NCBI GenBank assembly: GCA_964199315.1
Contig: OZ116711.1
Span: 4,464,001 to 4,528,000, forward strand
Direction: 5' to 3'
Source of the DNA: Orbicella franksi
Taxonomy: Eukaryota
Length of the DNA stretch: 64,000 nucleotides
The position numbers were made by a program, and so were the translations under genes. Below, in pieces: positions 527 to 22,902 of this stretch (the stretch's first letter is position 1; each line of letters starts with the position of its first letter). The notes under the pieces are model-generated. The model worked only from the letters and a program-made list of their open reading frames with translations, was not told the origin of the DNA and did not search any database.

Positions 527-3500
527 TCAGGCTCCTGGCTTTTTCCTTTTAAGTCTTTGTTTCTTTCTGCTTCCCACATTTGTCGCTCAAGTTGCAGCAG
601 GGCTAATGTTGACGCTTTCTCCTGTTCAATCTGTTCTAAATACTCTGCTTCTTTGTTTTGCATCAGAATTTCAGCTTCTAGAATTTTGGATTCTTTGTCT
701 TGTAAAGCTGACAATAAAAAGAATGAGAGCATATTATTTGAGTAAATACTGAACAGTCTCATACTTCCTTGACTGAAATATCGTTACTCGGTTGTACAGC
801 TTGACAGAGTGAAGTGCTGTTGGAGTACAGTATCTTGCCCTTCAAAATACAAGTAACAATCGAGGGTCCAGATAGCAGGGCTGCCATTGAGGGCCATAAC
901 CTGTAACACCTGTTATGGCTGAGTATGCTTGATTTTCCCTTGATGCTACAGGTGAAATTGCCTGTTTTTGATAGAATTCAACAACAAAGTAACAGGATTG
1001 CTATGGGTGTGGAGATCAAGGCTACAGGTGACTCAAAACTTAATGACAGACCTGGATAGTAATAATTTTTACCTTTATACTAACTGCCATAAATTTTCCA
1101 ATCACAAGAGTCTAATGGCACATACATAATCTTACAAATTCTACTACACATGCATGTACACAACCAAGGCATCCCAAGCTGATGACTCTTTGGTTTTTTT
1201 CTACTATTAGTTTGCTTACCAGCCAGTAGCTCCTGTTCTCGTCCACAGAAGACCTCACGTGCCTGTTCATAATCTACTGTGACTCTCTCTTTCTCCATCA
1301 CTAAGGATTTTATATTGTTCTCTTGTTGTTCTACCAGTTGCTTTAGCTCTTTGATTTTTTCTTGTGCTTGTAGGACTGCCTGTTCTTTCTCTCTCTTCAG
1401 CTTCATCATTATTGCATTGAATCGTATTTGCTGATCTTCTTCATAGCGTGATTTACTCTCTTGAACTTTCTGTGCTGCACCTTCATGTTCTTCCAGTTTA
1501 GTTTTGTACTCATTGACAATCATAACCAACTTTTCATTTTCTTGTCTTTGTCGAAGTTCGCTTCTTTCTTTATCAGTTTGTAATTGTCCAAGTTTATTTA
1601 GAATTTCAACCTTCTCAAGCTCAAGTTTAGATTTTATTGCAAGAAATGTGCTTTTTTCTTGCTCAAACTGTGAGTTTATTTGTACCAGCTCTCTTTCATA
1701 CTCTTTTCTAGTTCTTTTAGTTGTGTTTTGGATTGCTTGTTCCCTAAACAAATCTGCTTTTTGGTGTAAATTACCAACAGTGACTAGAACATCTTCCTTC
1801 ACCTTCGAGTCCCATTCCAAAATCAGCTGTCTACTGTCATTAAGACACTGACGAATGACCTGAAACTCACCCTTAACACAATCTCTGACCTTTGAATTCA
1901 CTTGTTGAAGTGTTTCATTTTTGGAATTAGCCTTCTCTAAACACACTTCACTAGTTCTTAATTGTTCCTCCAGCTGTTCTAGTCTGTCAAACATTTCATT
2001 TGCCATGGACTGACTTGTTCTCTCAAAGCTTTGATGATCTGAAACAAGTGTCACTTCCTTACCAAACTCTTCTAAGCCGCTCCCTTGAACTGGCAGATTA
2101 CTGTCAGAGCTACTCTCTGTTTGAGTGCTGTGATCCGTGCTCTGAGTTCCAGAACTACCGAGAGTCGGTGTTTGACTTGTATCGTCAAGAAGAGCAGTAC
2201 AATCGTCTTGAAGCTCACCTACTGGTTGGATATCAGAAGGGGATTCTTTCTCTTCAACATTTCCAGCCAAATCAGCGTCAAAAACTGTCACATAATCCTC
2301 ATGTGCTGATCGAAAAACTAAGTCACTATCATCAAGCGCTGAGCTTTTCTCAGAACCAGTGTCACTGTTACTTTTTTTCCTTTCGTTAGACTCACTGTTG
2401 TCAGAAGCCTCTGTAGTCAAGTTAGTTTGTTCACTGATGTCTGGAACATCCTTAGCACAGTATAATTCAGTTGGACCTTGCTCATCTTGTACAGGAGAGC
2501 TCTCACTTTCATTGCAAGTCCATTCAACTTGTGTTGAAGCATCCATGCTCATTTGTGTTGCTTTGTTTTCAGAAGACGACATTTCAGCAAGTAATGATGC
2601 TTCCTTCTTGTCGGTTATACTTTCACTAGTTCTACCTCCAAAAATCACAGGAAACTGGGCAACACTACTAAGATTTTCAAGTTCTTCTAATTGTAGGAAA
2701 CTACTTTTTCCGCTTTCATCTCTCATGCTGATGTTGATGGAGCAAGACTCGAGATATGAAGCTAATTCTGGAATCTGATCATTCAGTTCTTGAAGGTCTC
2801 TTTCTGTTATTATGGGAAGCTGTTCATCAAAAGGTTTGGGCGGCTTTTCCTGCAACAAGAACATCACTGAGTTTGCCTAACTACTTTGTGTTACAATTCA
2901 AATTTATTACTGGTTGTCAAGTACACAATTTTACTATAAAAAGAACCTTTTGTGAAAACAAGAACTGGGTGCTTAACGAAGAAATTGAACTGGGAAGGCT
3001 CAACTTTTCTGAATGGCCTGCAAAGAGACTAGCAATATCTACTTGCTGCTTAAAGATGAAAGACATACCCCAAATCTTGATGGTCTGTCAGACATACCAC
3101 TGAACAAACTTTGCAAAAAATGCTGGCCTGGAAAGAGAGAAAGAGGTAGAGATAGCAAAGAGAATAGACAAAAGTATTGTTACATATTATTATTATGTAT
3201 TATTGATTATTAATCCATAATTGAATCTGACATTAGAAATGAGCTCTCTCTACCCCAGGGGGGGGGGGTACTCCGTTATGTGGGTTATATAGGTATGTGC
3301 AGCAACAAAGGGTAGGGTTTTTCAGCCGTTTTGGTCATAAATAAGGTATGGCCTTTGCACTCCAGTCTTGAACTGGGTATGTTTCTTAGAAGAAGCTACT
3401 TTTTCATCATTATCAATAAGACGGTCAACAGAAGCCCTTGATAACTTATATTTTAGGCAACTGTGCCAGCTACAACAGTCATAAATAGGGCAGCAAAAAT

Positions 3501-6500: not shown

Positions 6501-9500
6501 ACTAACTTACTCTGCTTGGTATTACTAAATTAAATTTTGACCTCACTTGAAGATAAATGTCTTTCAAGTAAAAAAGTCATTAATAAATTAAAGCTTTTTG
6601 AGCCTAGAGGCTAAACACGTAAAGGGAAACTTGGCAAATGGGTAACTTTCTGGGAAACCAATTCACTATAAAATTTGGAGAAATTCTGTATTGAAATAAA
6701 ATTTCTGTCTGCAGCTGTAAGGTGTCCTACCTGAGCTTATACAGGTTTCTTATAATTTTTTTTAGGGGGAGTAGCTATTAAGTGACTGTGAGTATTCCAA
6801 GGCACTCCCCACTGGATGGAATGCTATTCCATTGCAGGTTATGCCAGCATTAAATGCAGATCTAGACCTGGGTGTGGATGTAAACAAGCAATATGATAGT
6901 AAATGAGAGTCGCCCAGTAACGTTTTGCGATGACCCCAGCTAGGGCTTGAAATGGAACCATTTGATCTTAGAGTTTGAGGATCTCCCATTACTGAAGGCT
7001 CTAATTTTAAATGGCAACCTAATAAATGACTGAACTAACCTTAAATGTGAGTGATTCTTTGTCAACATCATGAGCTGCTTTTGATGACTAGCACACAGAT
7101 CAGGAAGTACTGAAGTGTCACCCACATTTTTAGCTCGAGTTTGGTTGTACTGAAAGCCTTGTGACATGTCAGCTTGAGACTGTGTCAAGGTTTTTACATT
7201 CTGGAGAATCTGTTGCAGTCCTGCTAGTCTTTCATCCAGTCCTTTGATTTCTTTCATGTTTGTCTTATCGAGAGATTCTGTTGCAAAGAGAAGAGAACAA
7301 TGCCAATGACACATAATTGCCCACCACCACAATATACGTTACTGTCATCTCTCTCCAAAACAGACACATTTGGGACCAGCCCTAAGTTGCACCCTACAGA
7401 AACTGTTAGTTACAGAGGAACAAGTGAAATTCAGTTGGAACCAGTGAAACAGCCATCTCCGCCTTTGGGGGTGTCCACCTTGTCTATACAATGGAACCCT
7501 GTTAACGCAGTTACCAACGAGCCACGGAAATCTGGCCATATTAACAGGGTGGCCATATTAAATGTATTAAACATGGTTCACTGAAGAAAATGACTGACTG
7601 ATCTTTTGTTTAGGCCAGAATAAAGTGTCTGTAATAACAAGGTGGCCATGAGGCTGGGTTCCACTGTATTAAGAGATTTGACCATAGAACCCTGTCACAT
7701 GGCCTCTTCCTTAACACAACCACCTTGTTCCAGTCACTTTCTTTGGCCTCCAAAAAAGCTCTCATGAACCCCTTTGATATGCAGAGCATTCAAATTGATG
7801 CATTCCCAAAGAGTGAGAAATTAAAAGCTGTGCGGTTTTCTTCCTAGCAGGGTAAAGGAGCACACCCCTGTATAAAATTCTGAAAAATGCAAGTGTCTTA
7901 AAAATGGTTTCCTTGATTCTGAGCAACAATATGATTCTGTCTATGTTGTTTAAAGTGGAAATTGGTAACACAAAATGAACTGATGTGCACTTTGGTGGCA
8001 ATCTGTTGCTGTTTACCTCCAATATATAACTCAGATGTTTAAGAGACCAAGTCAGTATGGGAGCATGACACTGCATAAGAGTCTAAGTTGCACTCAACCT
8101 GAATACATGATGCTTGAATGACCTAATTAATACAACAAGCTTTATTTAGATCCGTATACTTGGCAATCACCAAGACAGTGCTATTAAGTTGGCAAAATAT
8201 TTAAATGGTACATAGGGAAGAGCCAGTTTTTGCTTACCTAAAACCTCATTAACTTCTTTTGTTATCTCAGTCAGATGTGTTTCATCAAACTGAAAATTAA
8301 TAACAGGGAGGTTCATAACTGCAGTTTTAAAAAAGATTACCTTGCGTAATGTCGAATATTAAAATAAATAAATCAAAATAAACTACAATATTTAGAGAGG
8401 AAACCACATCAGCCTTAGGTGATTTGACATTTGGAGATGATGGTTTTCATGGAGGAAGGAGAACCAGAGAACCACAAGAAAAAACCCTTGGAGCAAGGAA
8501 AGAACCAATGACAAACTCAACCCATATATGGCACTGGGACAGAATTGAATCCCGTTCACATTCTGATTGGTGGGAGGCAAGCACTGCGCCATCACTGCTA
8601 TCCAAAAATCAGGCAACAACTGTAATCAATGCCACTTGAAAAAAGAAAGCCAATAGTTTGCATGAAACCAGATAATATTGCCAACCTCACAACTGCGGAC
8701 ACCAGATTTAATAGATGGGAGCATTTTGCACTTTCCAGAATTATTCTTGGCATACAGGCTTGATTCAATAATATTTATGTACCTGCTCAACTGCCTCAAT
8801 GCACTGTTTTACCATATCTTGAAGGCTGTTCTTGTTATCCTGCGGAAAAACAACAACAACAACATCACGCTTTAACTATACTCAAACAAGCAGACTACCA
8901 CTTAGAGCAAATGGTTTGAGTAATTGTTTTAGTGGACATTATATACTAGGCCTTTCAGTGACATGCAATTTAACCCCTAAAAGAGACCAATCTGGGCATC
9001 GCTGGAACTTTATTTGATCCCTAAAAAAAGCTTTGAAACAGACAGCATTCTTCCAGTGCAACCTTAAAAGTACCTTGAAGGCAAAAAGTAGTGGCATTTT
9101 GTCATGAACACCCAAAGAGACCAAGACCAAAATTCATAATTTACAACCCTACACAAGATGGCAAGCATGCCTGACCTTTTCAAATGGGAATCCCCCCTTC
9201 CCTGGGAATGCTTTAAATCAATAGTCAAAGTCAGTGAGTTGTGATAAAATGATTGACTTACCTGTGCACTTATCCAATCCAGGAGACTAAACATGCCCTG
9301 TTGTCTGTCTTGGAACAGTTGTCTTGTTAAAAGACATGGAAGGACAGGTACCTTGGCTAACAGTGGTAACATCTGTTTGAACCTAGTAGAATGAACACAA
9401 TCTGAATCTTCAGCTTTGCCAGGGCAAGGGGATAGATTAAAAACATAATTTTCCATTAAAATTTAAAAGAACTGGGAAACAATAGAAAATGGTATTTACA

Positions 9501-12500
9501 TGTATACCTGTCAAGTAGCTCTATGTATCTTGTCCTGGAATCCAGAAACTCAGAATAAACTTGATGAACACTACTTGATCGTGCTTTAAACTCACTGTAA
9601 ACAAGTATTATTGAGCTGTCAGTCAGCAATAATCAAATAGCATGTGAAATAATCACACCATAGATTTTTAATAAGAAATTCTATCCCATCATCAGTCTCA
9701 CAAGAAAAAGAGCCAGCCTCCCCATCCAATCATTGTGAGAACTTTATCGTCAATCACAAATAAATTGTTGTCACTATGTTATAATTTTATAATAAAAGAA
9801 TTGGTTCATGCCTCTAGCTGTGCATATGGATCTATGGATCAAGTTATGGATCTACTTACTAGGAAGTTTGAAGAGCACTCAAGAAGCTAGAGTTGTTCTT
9901 AGCTACATGTCAAGCAACTCTTACACTTCTCTTGTGCTATACAAACTTCCCACATGCATCCATAACTTGATATACATGTGCTAAGCATGAACAAATTCTT
10001 TTTCTCACAATTACAACACAATACATTTATTATCTCATTCAAGGAGCAATTGGAAGTCACAAGAGAAAAAGGTCTAATTTTTCAAGCATCACTTTTCATT
10101 TTCTCATACAAATGAGAAATTTCCCTTTAAATTCATTTTCCTAAAAAAAAAAAAAAAAAAATAGATTACATATTTTAGTTTTTCAAACATACGAAAGTGA
10201 AAGTTTGCACCTCCATCAATCTTTGGCATACTTTTTTCCACAACTATTGATGTTTTTTTGTGGTTGTTGAAAATGGAAAAGGAAATCATACCAGAACTTC
10301 CCTTTTTCATTTTCAAGTCTGCCCAGGTATGTAGTGGTTGCGTATGACCAAGAGTGTCCAGAAATACAAGCTAAAACAGTAGAATACAGTTTCTTTTCTA
10401 ATACCTTGCAGTACTTTCCAAGTTGGCCACAACTGCTGCCCAACCCTTCTGTTGCAGTTTTTGCTCGAAAACTAGATTTTCACAGTTTTCTGCAATTTCC
10501 ACTGCTAGTGAATGGAAGTCCTAAAAATTGGACAAAAAATTGTATACTAATTTTCCACAGAATCTTAAGTGAACAATATCAAGATAAGCGTCTTCACAGT
10601 GCTCAGTTGTATCAGAGAACAAACATGTTTCTTCAAGAAAACAATAAAACCTATCACTCACTGAGCTCACTAACGCATTGTTTCACGTAAAGAATTCAAG
10701 TCCTGAAAAAACCACCATAAATAAGTTCTGATTCCTCTCATTCAGTAGCAAAAGAATGCCTTCCATGCTATTGTGTAATTTCTACGAGTCAGAAAAACTT
10801 ACCGCGGCTAGCTGAGCTCTGGATACAAGAGTTTCATATGTAGGCGGTAAATTGAAAGATTTGTCAACTTGCTCCTTTAAATTTTCTTCTGCAAGGAAAA
10901 GAAACAAAATTGTAGGGGTGCCTAGAATAAGAAAAAAAGTCCTAAATGACTTCTTGTAAATTGCAATATTCTCCTTCCGAATTGCCTTGTATTCTCTAAA
11001 AAAAGACAAACTAAGAGAGTTTGATGTTACATCATCTGTCAGTAAGGACCTTATTTGGTGCACCCATTCAAATATTTTTCTATCATTCTAAGCATCAATG
11101 TGTATATGGCCCAAGTAATTTCATTGGACCTCATGTACTAAAACATCTTTTATCAATCTACAAGCATTGGATACCCAACACAAGTCTGTACACAACTTCA
11201 AATTGTACCACAACTGAGTTAGGGCTTAACGGAGGAAGAGAAGAAAATTAACAGCAGAGTAATTTAAAATATTTTTAAAACAAAATTTTAACACAAAATT
11301 GAAATACAAACAAAACTGTAGCTTGAGGCGAATTTTCAACTACCCACTTAATCGTACTAAAAAAATAAAACTTACACTGGTGCACTGCACTTACCTGATC
11401 CTAAGTTGAGGCTGGGTGATGGAGGAATGGATGATTCAATGGTAGATTTACTGAACAGAAAGATCGGATTTGTATCCTAACAAGGCAACATAACATTAGA
11501 ATTTTACAAAATAAAAAAAATGCAAGAAAACCAGCAAGGTGGTACTAAAGGCCTGTAAGACAATTTTAGCAAATCATAGCCAATATACAACTGACGGCAA
11601 AAAGGTTGTACATCATTTAGGTCGCAATAACTTTTAGGAACTGTGGAAGACTACAGAGCATAATATAATAAATTTATTTGAGAATGACCATACTGGCATT
11701 TCCATACAAAATTTCTTGTTTTGAAAACAGAAAATCAATTAGCAAATTGAGATAGCTATAGTAGCAAAAATTAAAATGAATACAATAATATTTGCAAATA
11801 AAAAACATGGTTGTTTGCTTGTTTGACCCGATGAGAACTTTTTATTTTAGTACCAATAGTACTGTTTATTCACATGCTACTCACAGTTCCAGCACTACTA
11901 TAACTGCATACTCTCTCTGTCGGATCCAGCGCTTCACCATTAGATATCAAAAGAACTTGCTTGTCCTCAGGAATCCCCGTCACAGAAGCTACTGTACTCA
12001 TAAGCACCTGGACACTGTTAAACAGTTCACATTGATCATGTCAGATACACAGCCTGCCTGCACTCAATCTACTCTTATTTACCCTGATAGAAGATGAACA
12101 GCACAATGCACCAAGTTCTTATTTGTCATCATACTTAATACTTTTGATGACTAATCCTGGAAGTATGCCAGACATATAACTAAATAAATACTAGGTGACT
12201 TACAATTTGTGTACGAGTACAAGATCGAGTATAAGTATGACTTCTCAATTCTAGTTTGCATGATTCACATTATCATGTCACAAAACCATCTCATTCTACG
12301 AGCTACCCTCTCAACCTCAAACCATCAAGGGCAAGGGCTCTGGAATCACCACTGGTTCAAAATTTGAAAATCACATTAATATTACTCAATCTGGTAATTG
12401 TAATCCAATCTAAAGGTCTCTCTTGATCTTGTAAAGGCTGGTTTTCACTAGCGATGAAGTCGTAGTCGGAGTTGTAATCAGAAGCATAGAGCATTATGAC

Positions 12501-13912
12501 CTAGTGAAAATAAAACTGATGGAGTTGGAAGCTGAACACCCATTCTGCTTAAGACTGCGTTGCTTATAGTGAAAACTAGATTGTCGGAGTTGGAAGCAGA
12601 CGCAGGAGAATAAACCAATCACAGCGTTCAATTCCAGGCCTTGTGATTGGTTGGTTTTTCCGCTTCTGCTTTCAATTCCGACAATCTACTTTTCATTTGA
12701 TCATAAGTGACAGAGTCATAAAAGGAATTGGAAGAAATGGAAATGTCCTGATTCTTCCAACTCCGATTCCATCAAGCTTATGACTCCACTTACAACTCTG
12801 ATTTTCGATTTACACTAGGTCGTAAGCTCTCTTGACTCTGTCTATGACTCCAGCTCTGACTCTGACTCTGTCACTATTGCAAAACCAGCCTTAAATGACC
12901 CAGGGAACCACAAACCTCCTGAAACTCTGTTTTCAGAATGTCTGACAAGCATGCAGAAGATCACGGGATCAACTTGGGTTGAGGACTCACAATTTTTTAA
13001 CTGTCTCATGCTCGCAACAAACTGCATACATTTCCTTGTTACTATAGATCAAAGGAAGTTTGCTGTTTGAATGGCTAACTCTCGTTGGTTGAGCATGGGC
13101 CTGGAGTATTGGAAAGTCACAGGCTTAACACCTACTACAAGAACTCAGAATAAAATACAATTTCTGAGAATGCTATTATATTTCAAAGCAACGAAGTGTA
13201 TTTTAACATGCAGCACATTATTCTGTTTATGAAGTGATAAAAACACTCCATGTGTTTCAGAGCAAAAGGAAGTCTGCTTTTAAAATGTTCTCAAATGCTC
13301 ATTGAGTTTAACAACAGTATAACAAATGCTTTGGGCTTGTCTGTTTGGGCACCAATTCTGTAGGTGAAACCCTATCATATCACCATTGCTTGGCATTCCT
13401 TTTGTATGGCACTGTTTGGCTTACAGTATTTTTTAAAATGAAATTTGAATTTTTTTTCTAGCTTTGAACTTGGCTGCCTTACAGCTCCCCCATAATTATT
13501 CTTTCTTACTGTACAGTCTCGACATTTCACTTCATAATAGCCGCTGCATATCCTCTTTATTCCTTGTGTATTCATAAATTAAAACAAACACTTATTAAGC
13601 ATCCAAATTACTTATTCACGCATGTCGTACTTAGTGTCATATATGCCATATTGCAATATTGTTCAATTGATCGTTTGGGACAAATCGAGCCCATTCTGTC
13701 AGTAGAGCAAGCAAACAACAAGGAATAACAAGGAGCAGATATCATTTCGTAATACAATCAAATTGTCAAGTCACGTTACGTTATGGTGAGCACGTAATGC
13801 AAATGTCACTGTACCTGATGTACAACATTATGTTTTTTTCTCACCTTTCCATTGCCAGTTCCATTTCGAAGGTATATATCGTCCCCAGGTCGACATGAAA
13901 CACGTGCAACAT
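527..13912 (-). CDS. RB1CC1: RB1-inducible coiled-coil protein 1 (FIP200/Atg11-Atg17 autophagy scaffold), 3'-partial. Exons: 13845-13912, 11885-12014, 11395-11476, 10803-10888, 10405-10520, 9508-9594, 9262-9382, 8783-8839, 8238-8289, 7040-7277, 6387-6452, 5543-5629, 4359-4458, 3825-3906, 3069-3127, 1220-2849, 527-707
   Basis: Spliced peptides match recalled FIP200 motifs: MLHVFHVDLG N-terminus, DTNPIFLFSK, EQKLQQKGWAAVVANLE, SLLDWISAQ, MKEIKGLDERL, SVLPDLCASHQKQL, AVAEVVRRR, KPFDEQLP, then an acidic region and coiled coil in a 1630-bp exon. All introns are GT-AG and phases are continuous (about 1080 aa in window). Confidence 0.93.
4050..4345 (-). mobile_element. tRNA-derived SINE, decayed (Nin-domain-like family)
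   Basis: Reverse B-box-like GGGGCTTGAACCTGCAACC near 4322-4340. Body (CACAACACCAGGAACTCTGTGCCCTACTCTTT...) resembles a recalled cnidarian SINE core. Its head abuts the RB1CC1 exon donor at 4358. Confidence 0.55.
4888..5363. mobile_element. Non-autonomous hAT-like DNA transposon
   Basis: Perfect 8-bp TSD CAAATCAG (4880-4887 and 5364-5371), imperfect TIRs (TAGGGGT...ACCACTA), subterminal CGAT/ATCG repeats. Confidence 0.8.
5848..6022. mobile_element. MITE CAGGGGTTT...AAACCCCTG, copy 1 (copy 2 at 54193-54370)
   Basis: TIRs plus a body shared with 54193-54370, e.g. TTTTGAACTGAACTTCTTTA and TTGCCCAGTGCCCAGCCCTT. Confidence 0.75.
6785..6990 (-). mobile_element. Old copy of the SINE family at 46952-47247
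   Basis: Reverse complement aligns degenerately to the 46952 copy (CTGGATGG.ATGCTA.TCCA..GCAGG segment, ACCTGGGT segment, GGGCTTGAA B-box remnant). Confidence 0.5.
7489..7666. mobile_element. Tc1/mariner(pogo)-type MITE (related copy 36515-36701)
   Basis: TA-flanked CA(A/G)TGGAACC...GGTTCCACTG ends. AAATCTGGCCATATTAACAGGGTGGCC is shared with the 36515 copy. Confidence 0.75.
8418..8599 (-). mobile_element. tRNA-derived SINE, second family (related copy about 51520-51720)
   Basis: Reverse A-box (CACTGCGCCA, 8582-8591) and reverse B-box remnant (AATTGAATCC). AAAAACCCTTG.AGCAAGG..AGAACCAA...AAACTCAACCCA is shared with the 51660-51710 region. Confidence 0.65.
12435..12891. mobile_element. PIF/Harbinger-type MITE in RB1CC1 intron 1
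   Basis: TIR AGGCTGGTTTT...AAAACCAGCCT, TAA TSD both sides (12432-12434, 12892-12894), subterminal GTCGGA/ACTCTG-type repeats. Confidence 0.8.
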
Positions 13913-15968
13913 TTTGACGACGTTTCTGCCTTCTTGGTGCTTTTCACTGTCGTTAAAATGAGCAAATGCCAAGCAGTTCAAAGGATATTCTGCAAAAATG
14001 TAGTTGGATATGTCTTCGGCAGGAATGCCCAAGAAAACAACGACAAAACAGCCAAGTTTTCATCATTTTCCCTTTGAATGGTAGCGTTCTTTTCCTGAGG
14101 GATTCTCTTCCTTCATTTCAAATGATTGTTTCTACGAAAACAGGAAACCATTGTGTCATTTTCGTCGACTCTCCACAGAAATGTCGATGACTTCACTGTC
14201 TCTCTCTCTCTTGCAAAGCCATAACATCACACATATGAGCATGCGTGACAGTTTTGTCTGCTGGCCAGTAAAAAGCGGGGGGCTGGGGTAGGGGGTGGAA
14301 ACAAAACCACGTTACAACAACGTTTTTTCCCCCTATTTATTTCATCATCTTTTATCATACATTTATTTACAAAAAAAATTGCGAATTATCTAGGCAAACA
14401 CTCCTAACCCTCCTACAAAAATTTAAATTAATTTGAATTTAATCAATTGCTGAATTAATTTATTTGAGTTTACAAAAAAAAAAAAATACAAAGGAATATT
14501 TAGATGTGTACCTTGACCCTCTATCTCTCAATACAGTGGTATTTAAATTTCTCAAACCTCCAAGGGAAACAAAAAAATATCATTTTTGAGAAAAAAGAAT
14601 GCAGAAGATATCGCTGGTAAAATTACAGGGAAGCAAATCGAAGGTAAACAACTTTAGAAGTTGCGAGAAATCAAGGGTTTGAGAATTAAAAGGCAGGGCT
14701 AATACGTGGACCAGATCAATGCAGATCACTGATCTTATGTAAAATCATCAATTTAAATGAGAATGAAAACCATTCAGGATACATTATGCATAATTTGTCA
14801 AGTTGTGAATCCTGCTGATGTCCCGCCAAATTCTCAGCGCTAACAATTGAATTTATATTTTATATTTATTTCAAGAAAAATCTCAGATGAAAAATGTTTG
14901 CTTAAAAATGTAAAAAATATCTTATATCCTAGCTATATAATTTGCACAACAACAACAAGTAATATCCTTACACTGTGAAAATATGTTGTTTCAAGGTTGC
15001 TGAATGAGATTTGAGAGAAAACAAGAATATACTTTGTACTAATTAACATAGTTTATGTAATGTATCATGACAATTATGTGGATATGTAAATTAAATTATG
15101 GATTACTGTTAATGTGTACATTATGATTACTGCCAAAGCTCTATTGATCCCGTGGCAGGTGGAAAGGGTGGGGTACAGAGGTGCCTTATTTCCTGTCCAA
15201 ATCTTTTGGAAGCAACAAAAGCCTTCAGTTTCAACCCATAAAATTAAGACATACTTTTTCAAAGTTTCCCAATAGAAATTTAATCTTGTTGATGAATAAC
15301 TTTAAAAACACTAATTTACAACACCGAGTGCAAAATTATAGTTTTCTAAAAATTGTCACGGCGTATCTTTTAGAGAAAGGAGTGATAATAGAGCTTTCTT
15401 CTGTTGAAATATTCTAAGTAAAACTTTGATTAAGTATTACAAAAACTATGAGCTTATATTTCTGACTGGTAGTGCTCTATATTCTAGTTTCATGTGATGA
15501 AAGGGGTCAGACCATTTCTCTTGTGTTGCCACATATTGATGCTACCTTCCCAATGCTTGTCTACTGTTGATGAGCTCAACCACTAAAAGTGATACATTTT
15601 CTCTGGTATTTATAGAGGAGTTGAGTTTAAAGAAGAACATGTTTTATATACTATTTTCAGTTTGCCCTGGGCTAAAGAAATAAAACTATTGGGAAATCAG
15701 AGAGACATGATGACCCACCTACTTCAATTTTTTTGCATAAAGAATACTCAGCCATTGGGTAAATGGCCTAGTGAAATAGTAACAACAAAATGCACACTCT
15801 GCTTGGCTTATTTGTGACTATGACAAAATGTTGAATACTGTAACATTGGTAACATTACTGTCTCACTTTGTGTTCTTTTAAAATTAACTATGGGCAAAAT
15901 TTTATTTTGACCTATCGGTATTTTCTATTGTTTCTTCTTTAAATATTTTCCTTAGCTTTGTGTAAGAA

Positions 15969-17219
15969 TCAAATCTCCAGTGTCTTTGGCACTTCCCATG
16001 AGAAGCCAGGCTTGAAATGGCCAAAGACACTAGTTTCTTTGAAAATGGGTTTACGCAAATCTAGATCCCTGATGATTGCTCCAGGTCTGAGATCAAAGTT
16101 ATTCAGGATAACCTTTAAAAGTTCATTATCAGGAATTTCGCCACTGCCATAGCTGAAAACGGACACAGACAAAGGCTCAGCAATACCAATTGCATAGGCT
16201 ACTTGCACTAAAACACGCTTGCAAAGCTTTGCTGCAACCAATGACTTTGCAATCCACCTGCAGGCATAACTTGCTGACCTATCCACTTTTGTGGCATCTT
16301 TGCCTGAGAATGCACCGCCCCCGTGTGCACCCCACCCACCATAGGTGTCTACGATAATTTTGCGGCCTGTGAGACCAGCGTCTCCCATGGGACCCCCATA
16401 GAGAAAGATCCCTGAAGGTAGCAGATGGAAAATGGTGTTCTCATCAAGGTATTGTTCAGGAATGACACCTTTTATGATAGTCTCCTTTAAATGGTGTCGA
16501 ATTTCTTCCACAGGTACACCCTCTGCATGTTGGCTGGAGATCAATACAGTGTGAACTCGCTGTGGTATGCAGGCTCCACCTTGCAAACTGTATTCCACAG
16601 TCACTTGTGTCTTGCCATCGGGTCTAAGCCAAGGCAAAGTTCCATCCACCCTGCAATCTGTTAGTTGTTTCGTCAGTTTGTGGGAGAGTACCGTTGTTAA
16701 GGGCATTAATTCTTCAGTTTCATCTGTTGCATATCCAAACATCAAGCCCTGGTCACCTGCCCCAATCTCTAATTCTTTCTTGTCCAAGTACACGCTCCGA
16801 GCTATCTCGCCAACTTGCTCTTCAATCGAAAGCAAGACACTGCATGTTTTGTAATCAAAACCTTTGGAAGAATCATCGTATCCGATTTCTTTAACAGTGT
16901 TCCGTATAACGCTTTGATAGTCGACTCTCGCTCCAGAAGTAATCTCGCCAAAAGCCATAATCATTCCAGTTTTGGTTGCAGTCTCGCAGGCGACTTTGGC
17001 ATACGGGTCTTGTTCCAAGTGCGCGTCTAAAATCGCATCAGATATTTGATCGCACATTTTATCAGAATGCCCACGGCAAACGGACTCAGACGTGAAAAGA
17101 AATTCGCTCCGATCGCTTGTGCTGTACGCACCGCTAACATACGACCGTGAGCAGCTTGCAGCAGGAGCAAACTTGGATGCTATCAGGCGAGCCAGCATCT
17201 TTGCCCTTGAACTCAACAT
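15969..17219 (-). CDS. MAT: S-adenosylmethionine synthetase (MAT), intronless divergent paralog, 416 aa, with putative mitochondrial presequence
   Basis: Single ORF. Signature motifs [11 protein letters not shown] and GGGAFSGKD, plus [38 protein letters not shown] (animal-type). First ATG is at 17219; the ORF-track start at 17264 is a GTG. Confidence 0.95.
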
Positions 17220-17649
17220 GATTGTAGCGTAAAAAATAGTATTAGTAAAGGTGTTTGTCTTCACGTGACTAAAGTGCTATAAACTCTTCAGCCAGCAGAT
17301 CTTTTCGTACCTTGCAGAGCCTTGCGTAAATAATGGCATGGTGGTGCAATCGGGCGATTATCACAGGGAATCGATACCAGATCGCGATCAACAGTTTATT
17401 CAATTCCACGCGCAATATTTCGAGAACAACACGAAATCAGCTTTTAAATAATGAGTCGATAATTATTTTAATTCATAATGATCTTAATCGGTAATCAATA
17501 TTAATTATTCAAACATTTATGAGATCCAATATAGGATCGTTGATTAGTCGGATAACTCCGTAGCCCTTTGGAAATCCGATCTTGGGTGTCGGAAATTCTC
17601 GTAAAACTCCAGCACTTATCAACAAACCGAATTTCATTTCCGCTGCAAA
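17220..17649. promoter_or_regulatory. Putative bidirectional promoter/5'UTRs shared by MAT and NALCN
   Basis: 430 bp between divergent ATGs, CpG-containing, with palindromic E-box TCACGTGA (17261-17268), TTGCGTAA (17322-17329) and a CCAAT near 17526. Confidence 0.6.
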
Positions 17650-20600
17650 ATGGAAGCAAGAGGACAGTCCTTAGTTATTGAGTCTGACCATCATTCTTCA
17701 TCGCAAACCTTATGGCCCCTTCGGCAAGCGCTCTACGCCGAATCTGAGGACGACGATGAAGAGAACGAAGACGAATTATCGCGAACTTGGTGGGTAAAAA
17801 CTCGTTGGTTTCAGCGTCTAGTACAAGTATGTGCGCTTGTCAGTTTGACTTCTACAGCCATGAATTCGCCAGAAACATTTAAACATAACAATTCGCTGAG
17901 ATACATAACTCTTGCCCTAGACATTGTGGTCGCTGTTGTTTTTACCACTGAAATGATCGCGCAGATAAACATGTGGGGTCTATGGCGAAAACAGAAGGCT
18001 TACTTCAAGAAACCACAGTCTATTTTTAATGCAAGCATGGTTTTCCTTATAATGCTATCGATCTTGCTACAAATTATTGAAATTTCTGGCTATATCCCTG
18101 ATAATTACGTAGCATTTTCGGTTCCAAGAGCCCCAAGAGCGTTAATAATAGTTCGATTCTTCAATGTGCTTATTACAATCAGCTTGCCGAAGTCGGTGGC
18201 TCGACGCTGTAAACGGCAAATCTGGGCCGTCACTTTGTTCTTGTTGTATTTTATGGCGTTCGGTTCGATTATTGGAGTTCAATTATTCGGACGCAAAAAC
18301 TATTACTGTGTCAAGAATGGAGCTGATTTGAATAATCTGACATACAACGATCTGTTATTGACTGACCATCGCTGCAACAATGTTACCGGCGAAACAGGAT
18401 ATTTCTGTCCACAAGGGTTTAACTGTGTTTTTGTGGATTTTGAGGAGAAGGATAAAGATTATTTCGGGGACTTCCTGCTAAGTATTTTAACAGTCTATGA
18501 AAGTTCTACACAAGAAGGTTGGGTTCTCGTCATGTACCGAATGATGGACTTTCGATCGCATCCCCTAGTAATCGTTTATTTTGTGTTGCTCATTTTTTTC
18601 GTCGCGTGGCTTGTAAAGAACGTCTTCATCGCCGTGGTGTCGGAAACCTTCGCCGATATTCGGAGCCTGTATATGTACAGTCGGAAATCTTCGAAGCGTA
18701 CTTCGGCTCGGCTGGCCTCTCAAGTTATCAAGGACGCAGGAACCGGTTGGCATTTAGTCTCGGTGGATCACGAAGCGGCTAAAGGTCATGCACCATTGCG
18801 TGTTCGACAGATTGTTAACTCTATTTACTTTAAATACACAATGATCTTATTTGTTGTGGTTGACGCTTTTGTTCAAGCTACTGTCCATTACGAATCAAGG
18901 AGATACGCGCAATTTGGGTTCACCATAGTTTTCGACCTTGAAGTTTTCCTGAAGATCTCATGTATAGGCTTTCGACCCTACCTTCTCCGTAGAATGCAGC
19001 TAACAGAGTTTATTTTAGCTGTTGGCAGCACTGTTTTCGCTCTACCAATTCTGATCTCGGAGAAAGCGTCTTTTCTGGCTGTCTTTAACGTGATGCGAAT
19101 AATCCGACTTATTGGAGCGATTCCCAAGCTTCAAGAGTTTTGCGAGAAAATCTTCGGAACTGGAAAGAAACTTGGAAGTGCTATCGTGTTTACGTTGATT
19201 TTTGTGATGGTCTCCTCCGTGATAAGCATGCAGTTCTTTCTGACTTTAGATGTGAAGAGGTTTGGTACCTTCACTAGCTCCATACAGTCCATGTTTCAAA
19301 TCATTACCCAGGAAGGGTGGGTGGAAGTTCTGGATGACTTAATCAACGCAACTACGAACTCAGCTGCAAAGGCTTTTGTTGCCATCATAATCTTGGCAAA
19401 TCATCTTTTCTCCTCGCTGATTATCATGAGCGTTTTTGTTGCAGTTATCCTAGACAACTTGGAACTTGACGAAGAGGTGAAGATTATGAAACAGAAAAAA
19501 ATGGGCGGTGAAAGCCGAGAATCCACCGAGGAACTTCCGTTGCGTCTTCGGGTCTTCGAGCGTTTTCGGGATGACCCTCGGCTTGTGAAGTTGAGTAGGA
19601 TAAAGACAACAGCTGATTTTTCCACTCCCAAGATTCGTGACAGTTTTATGAAGAAGTACATAGACAGTTCGGGCTTGGAAACTCACATTGGTGTGGACGT
19701 GGGGGAGAAAATCGGTGAAACTTCGCAGTTGAGAAGACGCCGCACAGCAATTCCGATAAAGCTGTTAAATTCGACGATATCCGAAGTGGATAAACTTTCA
19801 AAGTTCGTGAGAAAACAATCGAGTATCACTGCGCTTATTAATGACAGCAATCGCCGAAGGACCTACGCGCTTCTTTCGCCCACCGAAATCTCCCCGAGAA
19901 ATCAGGCCACCGTCGGCAGTAAGCAGCAGCCCGCTTCGGTTTTCCGATCTGCTTCGAGGCGTTTTCGAAGTCGCCCTCCACCGTCACCGAAGCAAGCTCA
20001 AGGTGATGTCAAACAAGTGATGCGGATTGCCAGTCAAGCGACGGGTCTTCACTCGCAGTTAAGCCAAGATGAAAATAACACGGGCCGAGACTTTGACATC
20101 CAGTGGGTGCGAATAAAACGCGAAGAGGCTCAGAGGAAAAAGAGAGCTCAAGTCGAGAAGCTTCGTGAGAATCACCCCTACTTTGACCAGCCCCTCTTCT
20201 CACTACAGCGTGACTCGTGGCTCCGAAGGTTTCTACAGAGCATGGTAAACGCGCGTTACATCATTCCACCCGGGTACACAGAGCGAGCGTCACGCAATCA
20301 TATTGTCACGATGGCACGGCTTCACAAGGTTCTCGCGTCACAGACGTACCTGGAGTGGATTATGATCGTTGTCACGCTAGTGTCATCCATATCTATGATG
20401 CTAGAGACTCCTACAGAGCGCACGTTTGTCAGGCCTGCAACAGAAGTCATTGAGTACATCTTTGTTGTTGCCATGAGTTTGGAGCTTGGCGTAAAAATTC
20501 TTGCAAACGGTTTGATTTTCACACCTCATGCCGTTATACAGAACTTTGGAGGTGTTCTGGACGTGACCATATACCTCGTGGCACTTGCCTATGTTGCCTG

Positions 20601-22902
20601 GCAACCACATCCGATACCCGCCCGCTCGGGGGCTCAGGTGTTGATGGTATTAAGGTGCCTTCGTCCCTTACGTATCGTCACATTGGTCCCGAAAATGCAG
20701 AAGGTGATCCTTGAACTGGTTGGTGGCTATAAAGAAATTCTCAAAGTAACTGCCGTGCAGTCTATTCTTATGTTCATTTTCGCCAGTTACGGTGTCCAGG
20801 TTTTCTCTGGCAAGTTCAGAAGCTGCAACGATCGAAGTATTAAGACCGAAGAGGAGTGTACAGGAATATTTGAAATAGAAATTGCCACGCCTCGCGAATT
20901 ACGCGTCGTCGCGGAATCTTCAAAAATGATGGTCCCACGCGTGTGGAAAAATCCCAGGAACTTCGACTTCGATAATGTTATCAACGCATTTCTAGCCCTG
21001 TTCGAAGTTCTTTCCTTGGAAGGCTGGTTGGAAGTGCGAGATGTGATCCAGGCAGTCGTAGCTCCGGAATACAGTATCTATGTCCATATTTACGTGCTTC
21101 TTGGAAGCATGGTCGGGCTGACCTTGTTCGTCGGGGTGATTGTCATGAATTTCAATGAGAACAAAGGCATTGCTTTACTCACTGTTGATCAGAGACGATG
21201 GCAGGATCTGAAGAAGCGCCTCCGACTGGCGCAACCTCTCCATCTTGCCCCTAGACCAAGGAAAGAAGGTTTTCGAGCCGTTTTGTTCGACGCCACGCAG
21301 TCAAGGATCTACAAAGTTATCGACATCTGTTTGGTGGTAATTACTTGCTTGACAGTCACGATCGCTCAGTGGACTACAGAGGACAATCTGAGAATGCGTG
21401 ACGCGCTGACCAGTACTGCAGCTGTGTGCTCGCTGTTGTTCGTTGTGGACATGTTGCTGAAAATTATCGCTTTCACCTTCCGAGGATACTGGCAAAGCCG
21501 GAGAAACCGGTTTGACCTGTTCTTGACCAGTCTCGGGGTACTGTGGGTGACGCTGAATTTTTCCTTAAAAGGGAGTGGTACGCCATATACAGTGACTACT
21601 TTTTTCGGGATGGTGATCATATTGTTCCGCTTCTTGACGCTCTCAGGTAAACACGACACGCTCAAGATGCTGATGTTGACTGTGGTCATGTCGCTGATAA
21701 AGAGCTTCTTCATCATCGCTGTTTTGATCGTTCTAATGCTCAGCTACTCTTTGGCCGGGGTGATCTTGTTCGGAACAGTGAAGTATGGAGAAGCGTTGAA
21801 CCGTCACGCCAACTTCAAGACTAGCTTTAACGCCATGATCCTTCTGTTCCGCATCACAACTGGAGAGGACTGGAACAAGATAATGCACGACTGTATGCTT
21901 TCTAAGCCTTACTGCACGGAAAATGCGGACACACCCAACTTCTGGCAAACTGATTGTGGCAACATCGCCGCGGCGCTGATTTATTTCATCTCGTTTTACG
22001 TCATCGTGACTTTTGTATTCTTGAACCTTTTCATCGCTGTCATCATTGAGAATTTTTCGTTGTTCTACTCGAGCGATGAAGACTCGCTCATCAGCAACAC
22101 AGACCTAAGAGACTTTCAGCTGACTTGGAACTTAGTGGATAAATACCGTAAAGGGGTGTTATCAGTTAGGCAAGCTAAGCTTGTGCTTCGCTTGCTGAAA
22201 GGCCGCTTAGAAGTTGACAGTGGGTCGCTGTTGTTCAAACACATGTGCTGCGAGATTGAAAAGCTTCGGAACGGCTGTGATGTTTCTTTTCACGATGTTC
22301 TAGGCGTGCTAGCTTACCGTTCGGTAGACATCAGTCGAAGTTTGCAACTAGAAGAGCTTCTCGAGCGAGAAGAACTGGAATATCAGATCGAGGAGGAAGT
22401 GGCCATACAGACCATCCGTGATTGGTTCACCAACCTGCGCAAGAAGCGGGCCGAGCGGGAATGGATCCGACATTTAGAGCAAGGTGGCATTCCATTGGCT
22501 GGAGGTATCCAACTGTCTGATAAAAGTCCTGGGGCCTCAAGCGCGGAGAGCTTAGAACACTCAGCTAATGAAGACCCTGAGCGTGAGGAGCGTGATACCG
22601 AACGCGAGGCTCGAGAACACGACAGTAGCGAAGATGATGATTTTCCAGTGTCGCCTTCTTCCAAAGGACCAGCAATTCTCCTTTCTGCTCCGCCGCCAGC
22701 CAAGAAAACGGAACGAAGTAATTCTGCACCTCGTAAGAGTTCTGTTACATTTCCCGATGAATTGTCGATGTCAGCGAAACGACGAAGTCTACCGGAAGCC
22801 CTGACTAATCTGAAGACACGAAAGAAAAGTATTCCCGAGATAAAGGAGTTCGCCGGAGAGGTTCGTGATTGGTGGACGACTCAGATGAATGACGGGCCCT
22901 GA
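17650..22902 (+). CDS. NALCN: Sodium leak channel NALCN-family four-domain channel, single exon, 1750 aa, EEEE filter
   Basis: P-loops TQEGW, TQEGW, SLEGW, TGEDWNKIMHDC. LRENHPYFDQPLF in the II-III linker, LMVLRCLRPLR S4, VDQRRWQDLKKRL, IEEEVAIQTIRDW. Confidence 0.96.
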   Translation: MEARGQSLVIESDHHSSSQTLWPLRQALYAESEDDDEENEDELSRTWWVKTRWFQRLVQVCALVSLTSTAMNSPETFKHNNSLRYITLALDIVVAVVFTTEMIAQINMWGLWRKQKAYFKKPQSIFNASMVFLIMLSILLQIIEISGYIPDNYVAFSVPRAPRALIIVRFFNVLITISLPKSVARRCKRQIWAVTLFLLYFMAFGSIIGVQLFGRKNYYCVKNGADLNNLTYNDLLLTDHRCNNVTGETGYFCPQGFNCVFVDFEEKDKDYFGDFLLSILTVYESSTQEGWVLVMYRMMDFRSHPLVIVYFVLLIFFVAWLVKNVFIAVVSETFADIRSLYMYSRKSSKRTSARLASQVIKDAGTGWHLVSVDHEAAKGHAPLRVRQIVNSIYFKYTMILFVVVDAFVQATVHYESRRYAQFGFTIVFDLEVFLKISCIGFRPYLLRRMQLTEFILAVGSTVFALPILISEKASFLAVFNVMRIIRLIGAIPKLQEFCEKIFGTGKKLGSAIVFTLIFVMVSSVISMQFFLTLDVKRFGTFTSSIQSMFQIITQEGWVEVLDDLINATTNSAAKAFVAIIILANHLFSSLIIMSVFVAVILDNLELDEEVKIMKQKKMGGESRESTEELPLRLRVFERFRDDPRLVKLSRIKTTADFSTPKIRDSFMKKYIDSSGLETHIGVDVGEKIGETSQLRRRRTAIPIKLLNSTISEVDKLSKFVRKQSSITALINDSNRRRTYALLSPTEISPRNQATVGSKQQPASVFRSASRRFRSRPPPSPKQAQGDVKQVMRIASQATGLHSQLSQDENNTGRDFDIQWVRIKREEAQRKKRAQVEKLRENHPYFDQPLFSLQRDSWLRRFLQSMVNARYIIPPGYTERASRNHIVTMARLHKVLASQTYLEWIMIVVTLVSSISMMLETPTERTFVRPATEVIEYIFVVAMSLELGVKILANGLIFTPHAVIQNFGGVLDVTIYLVALAYVAWQPHPIPARSGAQVLMVLRCLRPLRIVTLVPKMQKVILELVGGYKEILKVTAVQSILMFIFASYGVQVFSGKFRSCNDRSIKTEEECTGIFEIEIATPRELRVVAESSKMMVPRVWKNPRNFDFDNVINAFLALFEVLSLEGWLEVRDVIQAVVAPEYSIYVHIYVLLGSMVGLTLFVGVIVMNFNENKGIALLTVDQRRWQDLKKRLRLAQPLHLAPRPRKEGFRAVLFDATQSRIYKVIDICLVVITCLTVTIAQWTTEDNLRMRDALTSTAAVCSLLFVVDMLLKIIAFTFRGYWQSRRNRFDLFLTSLGVLWVTLNFSLKGSGTPYTVTTFFGMVIILFRFLTLSGKHDTLKMLMLTVVMSLIKSFFIIAVLIVLMLSYSLAGVILFGTVKYGEALNRHANFKTSFNAMILLFRITTGEDWNKIMHDCMLSKPYCTENADTPNFWQTDCGNIAAALIYFISFYVIVTFVFLNLFIAVIIENFSLFYSSDEDSLISNTDLRDFQLTWNLVDKYRKGVLSVRQAKLVLRLLKGRLEVDSGSLLFKHMCCEIEKLRNGCDVSFHDVLGVLAYRSVDISRSLQLEELLEREELEYQIEEEVAIQTIRDWFTNLRKKRAEREWIRHLEQGGIPLAGGIQLSDKSPGASSAESLEHSANEDPEREERDTEREAREHDSSEDDDFPVSPSSKGPAILLSAPPPAKKTERSNSAPRKSSVTFPDELSMSAKRRSLPEALTNLKTRKKSIPEIKEFAGEVRDWWTTQMNDGP

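Follow-up and report, generated by a model that had tools for sequence, protein, structure and literature searches.

In the textbook view, methionine adenosyltransferase (MAT) makes S-adenosylmethionine (SAM) in the cytoplasm, from where SLC25A26 brings it into mitochondria (PMC4667130); this carrier, also called SAMC, supplies the matrix by exchanging cytosol-made SAM for SAH (PMC4667130, PMC9239748). The matrix pool of SAM in turn sets a limit on lipoylation, on the biogenesis of complex I and Fe-S clusters and on the assembly of mitoribosomes (PMC7895438, PMC12198368, PMC13510680). In mammals, a MAT catalytic subunit has itself been proposed to act within mitochondria: MATα1 was reported in hepatocyte mitochondria, where CK2 phosphorylation and PIN1 binding govern its level (Barbier-Torres et al. 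2022, PMC8799735). The terms 'presequence' and 'MTS' are absent from the main text of that report. Paralogues retained after gaining a mitochondrial presequence are known as neolocalised duplicates (PMC2790464). Our literature search, whose coverage was incomplete, found neither an animal MAT reported to carry a presequence of its own nor any account of the cnidarian paralogue presented here, and the papers on diatom SAMS and Caenorhabditis elegans sams-1 contain no mitochondrially targeted MAT.

Here we describe a MAT paralogue of the coral Orbicella franksi that is likely to be targeted to the mitochondrial matrix, with SAM synthesis inside the organelle. Unlike SAMC/SLC25A26, it would make SAM in situ, and it differs from mammalian MATα1, for which one gene product serves both cytosol and mitochondria, in being a separate paralogue with a classical-type predicted presequence; the history that we propose for it is that of a neolocalised duplicate. 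The protein would be a full member of the MAT family equipped with a localisation device that has not been described for MAT in animals.

The gene occupies the minus strand of a 64,000-nucleotide stretch of contig OZ116711.1 (assembly GCA_964199315.1, positions 4,464,001 to 4,528,000; hereafter the window), and the coordinates of its features, counted from the first letter of the window, are collected in Table 1. It opens with an ATG at 17219-17217, closes with a stop codon at 15971-15969 and encodes a product of 416 aa, in which Pfam places the domains S-AdoMet_synt_N (PF00438, residues 40-135), _M (PF02772, 151-272) and _C (PF02773, 275-409), all far over the gathering score and with E-values between 4e-41 and 3e-61. 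The HMMER alignment with the human MAT2A and rat MAT1A structures gives 68% identity over residues 36-415, has just one gap, one residue long, from end to end, and defines the residue numbering used below (window MAT = human number + 22). Because the identity to solved MAT structures is this high, a structure model was unnecessary; an AlphaFold2 model computed from the alignment of the 17-sequence clade described below was poor (mean pLDDT 48.9) and was set aside.

Table 1. Features of the MAT paralogue locus, in positions of the window.
Feature	Position	Strand	Basis
MAT paralogue CDS, single exon (416 codons and stop)	15969..17219	minus	ORF translation, Pfam, RNA
Predicted cleavable mitochondrial presequence, codons 1-27	17139..17219	minus	Composition, Arg site, dN/dS
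Conserved junction, codons 28-39, with predicted mature N-terminus, before catalytic core	17103..17138	minus	Clade alignment
5' UTR (far end approximate; main start maybe nearer, ~17263-17343)	17220..17447	minus	RNA contigs
uORF, 20 codons and TAG, in frame with main ORF	17277..17339	minus	Script scan of 5' UTR
3' UTR, observed part, long	15400..15968	minus	Reads and contigs continuous from stop codon
Palindromic ATCGAT (GTATCGATTC) in the shared spacer, ~150 nt 5' of MAT start codon	17370..17375	.	
Channel gene, intronless, 1750 aa, four Ion_trans repeats	17650..22902	plus	ORF; Pfam Ion_trans x4, E=1e-132

A database search identified 16 orthologue clusters with 72-93% identity to the window protein, all ranking above every canonical MAT (≤70%). 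Together with the window protein these make up a clade of 17 members, for which Nematostella vectensis (P0012) is the sole taxonomic anchor. Canonical animal MATs, including human MAT2A and MAT1A and the Nematostella proteins P0034 and P0057, belong to the same three-domain family, are 66-70% identical and share all 12 catalytic residues. The 12 catalytic residues of human MAT are H29, D31, E57, E70, Q113, K181, D258, R264, K265, K285, K289 and D291 (PMC7271947). Their window equivalents (H51, D53, E79, E92, Q135, K203, D280, R286, K287, K307, K311 and D313) are all present and are invariant in all 17 clade members. Comparison with the orthologues further shows that the MAT core is under strong purifying selection, its dN/dS being 0.04-0.09 wherever dS is unsaturated.

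An extension of 39 aa stands ahead of this core, whose FLFTSES begins at F40 of the translated ORF. The initial annotation, made from the letters of the window, had read this extension as a mitochondrial-type presequence, and the particulars that it listed were all recovered: five basic residues fall within the first 27 (R5, K7, R11, K16 and R25), no acidic residue precedes D36, and the R-S-Y motif is found as R25-S26-Y27, followed by V28. Mitochondrial presequences are recognised by a net positive charge, by freedom from acidic residues, by R-2 or R-3 sites and by Icp55-type trimming of Y, F or L; in an MPP-type site the Arg occupies either -2 or -3, the latter in combination with an aromatic or bulky residue at -1. 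Residues 9-13 of the predicted presequence, LARLI, form a φ-x-x-φ-φ motif, and the hydrophobic moment of the N-terminus is moderate at 0.49. A signal-peptide h-region, an unbroken hydrophobic stretch of about 7-15 residues, was sought in the window MAT and is absent, the best 12-residue Kyte-Doolittle mean being 1.14 with charges breaking every stretch. An ESM Atlas feature search with residues 1-40 was uninformative, all scores being ≤0.54 and mainly from small fragments.

To examine the transcript, we used polyA RNA-seq over 15400-17800, comprising two runs as raw reads and two RNA assemblies. Coverage is unbroken from 15400 through the ORF to 17369 in the X2 contig and to ~17447 in the X1 contig, and since no splice joints were found in the reads or contigs across the gene, the MAT gene is intronless. 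The bin that holds the ATG (17182-17262) is read at gene-body depth by the polyA reads, and every pair of the stranded run X21 is oriented as expected for minus-strand RNA. On the 3' side, the X1 contig runs for ~565 more letters past 15400. On the 5' side, the contigs stop at ~17445-17447 (X1) and 17369 (X2), the X23 raw reads are thin over 17263-17424, and no run gives any RNA coverage at 17446-17623, a gap that parts the MAT transcript from that of its neighbour. The transcription start of the paralogue is 50-230 nt 5' of the ATG; a start downstream of 17219, which the initial annotation had named as incompatible with its reading, is at odds with RNA that extends beyond the ATG to 17369-~17447. 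Past 17369, the X2 contig carries 48 purine-rich letters (transcript strand) that are absent from the window. We considered them as a spliced leader or upstream exon and rejected this, as there is no AG acceptor and the letters occur in a single contig; this contig end is probably an assembly chimera or artefact.

The MAT ATG has an A at -3. The single upstream ATG in the 5' UTR, at 17339, is limited to transcripts that start upstream of that position and opens the uORF of Table 1, whose terminal TAG (17279-17277) lies in frame 19 codons before the MAT ATG; a longer N-terminus is ruled out by this stop codon. The uORF ATG is shared with the closest relative, L005. Translation from a later Met, which had also been raised against the presequence reading, is not viable: ahead of the core there is just one further Met, M8, within the predicted presequence, and M55, which follows it, comes after the essential segment with FLFTSES, H51 and D53. 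Because there is no usable later Met and an in-frame stop stands upstream, any active product must include the extension, which, as judged from the reading frame, is necessarily translated.

The orthologues keep the extension in kind in 16 of 16 clusters, Nematostella included, at a length of 22-45 aa to the junction. Across the 17 members, the extensions hold 4-9 Lys or Arg, are rich in Ser, Ala and Leu and have a net charge of +4 to +10; 14 of them contain no acidic residue and the other three contain 1-2 Glu. In contrast, the N-termini of canonical MATs (n=13, from cnidarians and other animals) are short, acidic or neutral, with net charges of -5 to +1, so that the clade pattern exceeds what chance would give. 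An Arg at -2 or -3 precedes the conserved V-[ST]-G(-P-Y-S) in all 17 members. Arg-3 occurs as R-x-Y/F/C and Arg-2 as R-N, R-G or R-Y, and both forms predict one and the same mature N-terminus; at the junction, V28 and G30 reach 90% conservation or more over the whole clade, and the consensus reads V-x-G-P-Y-S-T-S-D-R-S. The presequence itself drops to 27-50% identity to that of the window protein in distant orthologues, in which the core retains 76-84%. For closely related species pairs, the presequence gives a dN/dS of 0.57-0.65 and the core one of 0.08-0.09. By these comparisons the predicted presequence is fast-evolving while its composition is kept.

We read the extension as a cleavable matrix presequence because it is obligately translated, because its sequence is free to vary while its composition stays basic and acid-free, because the Arg at -2/-3 is conserved, and because the paralogue is old. 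Composition, Arg site, transcript and conservation all point to a mitochondrial-type presequence and, through predicted import, to a probable site of SAM synthesis in the matrix. Should the protein instead remain a cytosolic or nuclear enzyme, the basic extension would be a disordered regulatory or interaction tail. Two observations would suit such a tail. The TOM20-type φ-x-x-φ-φ motif occurs in nine members and is lacking in eight of the 17, and the hydrophobic moments of the clade (0.45-0.92) overlap those of canonical N-termini and fail to separate the two; of the expectation that orthologues would share an amphipathic, basic extension, the basic extension is borne out, and the measures of amphipathicity are only moderate. 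A regulatory tail, however, would be expected to keep its sequence, whereas conservation in this clade is confined to composition, length class and the Arg at -2/-3, at the low identities given above. This pattern, together with the avoidance of acidic residues in most members, matches that of cleavable targeting peptides, and we regard a cytosolic tail as unlikely.

With the cleavable presequence as the preferred reading, the following route can be proposed. The ~27-residue presequence would direct the nuclear-encoded MAT through TOM and TIM23 into the matrix, where MPP would remove it, possibly followed by Icp55-type trimming of Y27, to leave a mature start near V28. The mature enzyme would then make SAM from matrix methionine and ATP, and its clients may include lipoate synthesis, ubiquinone methylation and the methylation of mitochondrial rRNA, tRNA and protein. 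Import may be inefficient, so that part of the protein is imported and part stays cytosolic. The moderate strength of the presequence would allow this, and the presequence-less mammalian MATα1 is reported in cytosol, nucleus and mitochondria (PMC8799735). Such dual localisation nevertheless seems improbable to us, since the transcript offers no alternative start codon that would give a presequence-free active enzyme, and since these animals already hold one or two canonical cytosolic-type MAT genes.

That the extension might target a different compartment, whether the secretory pathway, the nucleus or nucleolus, or peroxisomes, is suggested by its N-terminal position and basic charge, as such N-termini are sometimes nuclear or nucleolar signals. 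The peroxisomal PTS1 consensus is of the SKL type, and the C-termini of the clade (-LEI, -LEF, -LKL and similar) do not fit it. For the nuclear option, the basic residues occur one at a time, scattered between Ser, Ala and Leu, unlike the clustered residues of a classical NLS. For the secretory option, no hydrophobic core was found in any of the clade extensions, as no uncharged run exceeds 11 residues and no Kyte-Doolittle mean over 12 residues exceeds 1.6. Targeting of this kind is accordingly a very improbable account of the extension. We give almost no credence to the speculative client named in the initial annotation, by which the paralogue would exist specifically to feed a mitochondrial DSYB-type methyltransferase in DMSP synthesis: the general SAM dependence of DSYB is all that speaks for it, the clade extends to a sea anemone, Nematostella, and to two or more lineages that branch more deeply, and the conserved neighbours at the locus are channel and ATG11-like genes, with no sulfur metabolism genes and no link to DMSP synthesis.

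The age and origin of the paralogue were approached through a maximum-likelihood tree of the core only, with the extension excluded. The extension-bearing proteins are monophyletic in this tree (support 100/98) and belong to neither the canonical hexacoral MAT clade nor that of octocorals; the deeper placement of the clade lacks resolution. A second whole-database search, with the deepest member (P0016) as query, found no more extension-bearing members, and none in octocorals, medusozoans or other phyla. Six further sequences (P0028, P0044, P0065, P0113, P0115 and P0118) were considered as extended forms and rejected, being gene models in which internal segments are duplicated and the N-terminus is acidic. 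Judging from the sequences, the paralogue and the canonical cytosolic-type MATs have existed side by side from a time that precedes the split of sea anemones and stony corals.

Gene structure also sets the clade, which is intronless and bears the basic 22-45-aa extension, apart from canonical MATs, which have short acidic or neutral N-termini and, in the one gene examined, introns. In Nematostella, the locus of the extended paralogue has a length of exactly 428 codons and a stop, leaving no room for introns, and the canonical P0057 spreads 417 aa over 3231 bp. Because the extended copy is intronless and the canonical P0057 is intron-bearing, we propose that the extended copy probably arose by retroposition. 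With a duplication that predates the Actiniaria-Scleractinia split, any polyA remnant or target-site duplications would by now be expected to have been lost. The two canonical Nematostella MAT genes, encoding 412 and 417 aa, form a head-to-head pair on a different chromosome (L009).

The neighbourhood of the paralogue is itself conserved. The channel gene is transcribed divergently, its coding sequence beginning 430 bp from the MAT start codon (spacer 17220-17649) and its transcript at ~17624-17638. MAT and channel are arranged head-to-head in nine of ten loci (the window, L001, L002, L003, L004 from Nematostella, L005, L007, L008 and the P0015 contig), with spacers of 240-450 bp where the spacer DNA was read; in the tenth, L006, the channel gene is ~3 kb from the MAT paralogue. 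The neighbour in these loci is an intronless gene of ~1750 aa with four Ion_trans repeats. As stony corals and Nematostella alike keep the pairing, a shared promoter conserved over a long time is indicated. The ATCGAT palindrome is similarly placed in five of seven orthologous spacers, compared with a background of ~0.1 per kb in most of the sources (up to 0.5 in two short contigs), and resembles a DRE-type core promoter element. In Nematostella, a second channel copy of ~1759 aa is located just past the one beside the MAT paralogue (L004:1-9547).

On the other side of the gene, six or so short conserved coding blocks at ~9500-13960 (minus strand) show collinearity with a gene, annotated with ATG17_like/ATG11 domains, that lies downstream of the orthologue in Nematostella. 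A three-gene microsynteny of channel, MAT and ATG11-like gene is retained in this way, and because the multi-exon ATG11-like neighbour has introns, the region is not intron-free as a whole. Farther off, an ORF of 595 aa at 1080-2867 (minus strand) has no Pfam match at E≤0.01.

The core of the window protein carries a number of changes at otherwise constant positions: among 98 canonical MATs, 199 columns show conservation of ≥97%, and the window protein deviates at 12 of these columns. Three of the deviations, G26C, E27R and P30S (human numbering), flank the catalytic H29 and D31 and convert GEGHPDK to CRGHSDK. The altered motif spans residues 47-53 (window 17062-17082, minus strand), and GEGHPDK is invariant in 97-98 of the 98 canonical sequences. 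Within the clade the site varies (C/N/S/G, E/R/P/V and S/T/A/P at the three positions) around a fixed H, D and K, with G26 and P30 altered in 15 of 17 members. N105S, V204L and V361I are substituted clade-wide (17/17), and the near-invariant A298 is Cys in 13 of the 17. As judged from its residues, the window protein would be a working MAT, possibly with altered kinetics or function tied to G26C, E27R and P30S; the changes in the signature motif and the Cys at A298 may also mean altered regulation or redox sensitivity.

We lean, with less assurance than for the targeting of this one protein, towards the wider proposition that hexacorallian cnidarians make SAM in the matrix by means of a dedicated, presequence-bearing and probably retroposed MAT, which would be the first such MAT in an animal. 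Nematostella is genetically tractable and carries the orthologue P0012, which makes the idea directly testable there. If true, the paralogue would break the general rule by which SAM in the matrix comes from the cytosol through SLC25A26, and a MAT gene would have been retained for hundreds of millions of years beside an intronless channel gene. It would likewise provide a clean case of a duplicate kept through relocalisation and, for these animals, a natural experiment on the uncoupling of mitochondrial from cytosolic methylation potential.
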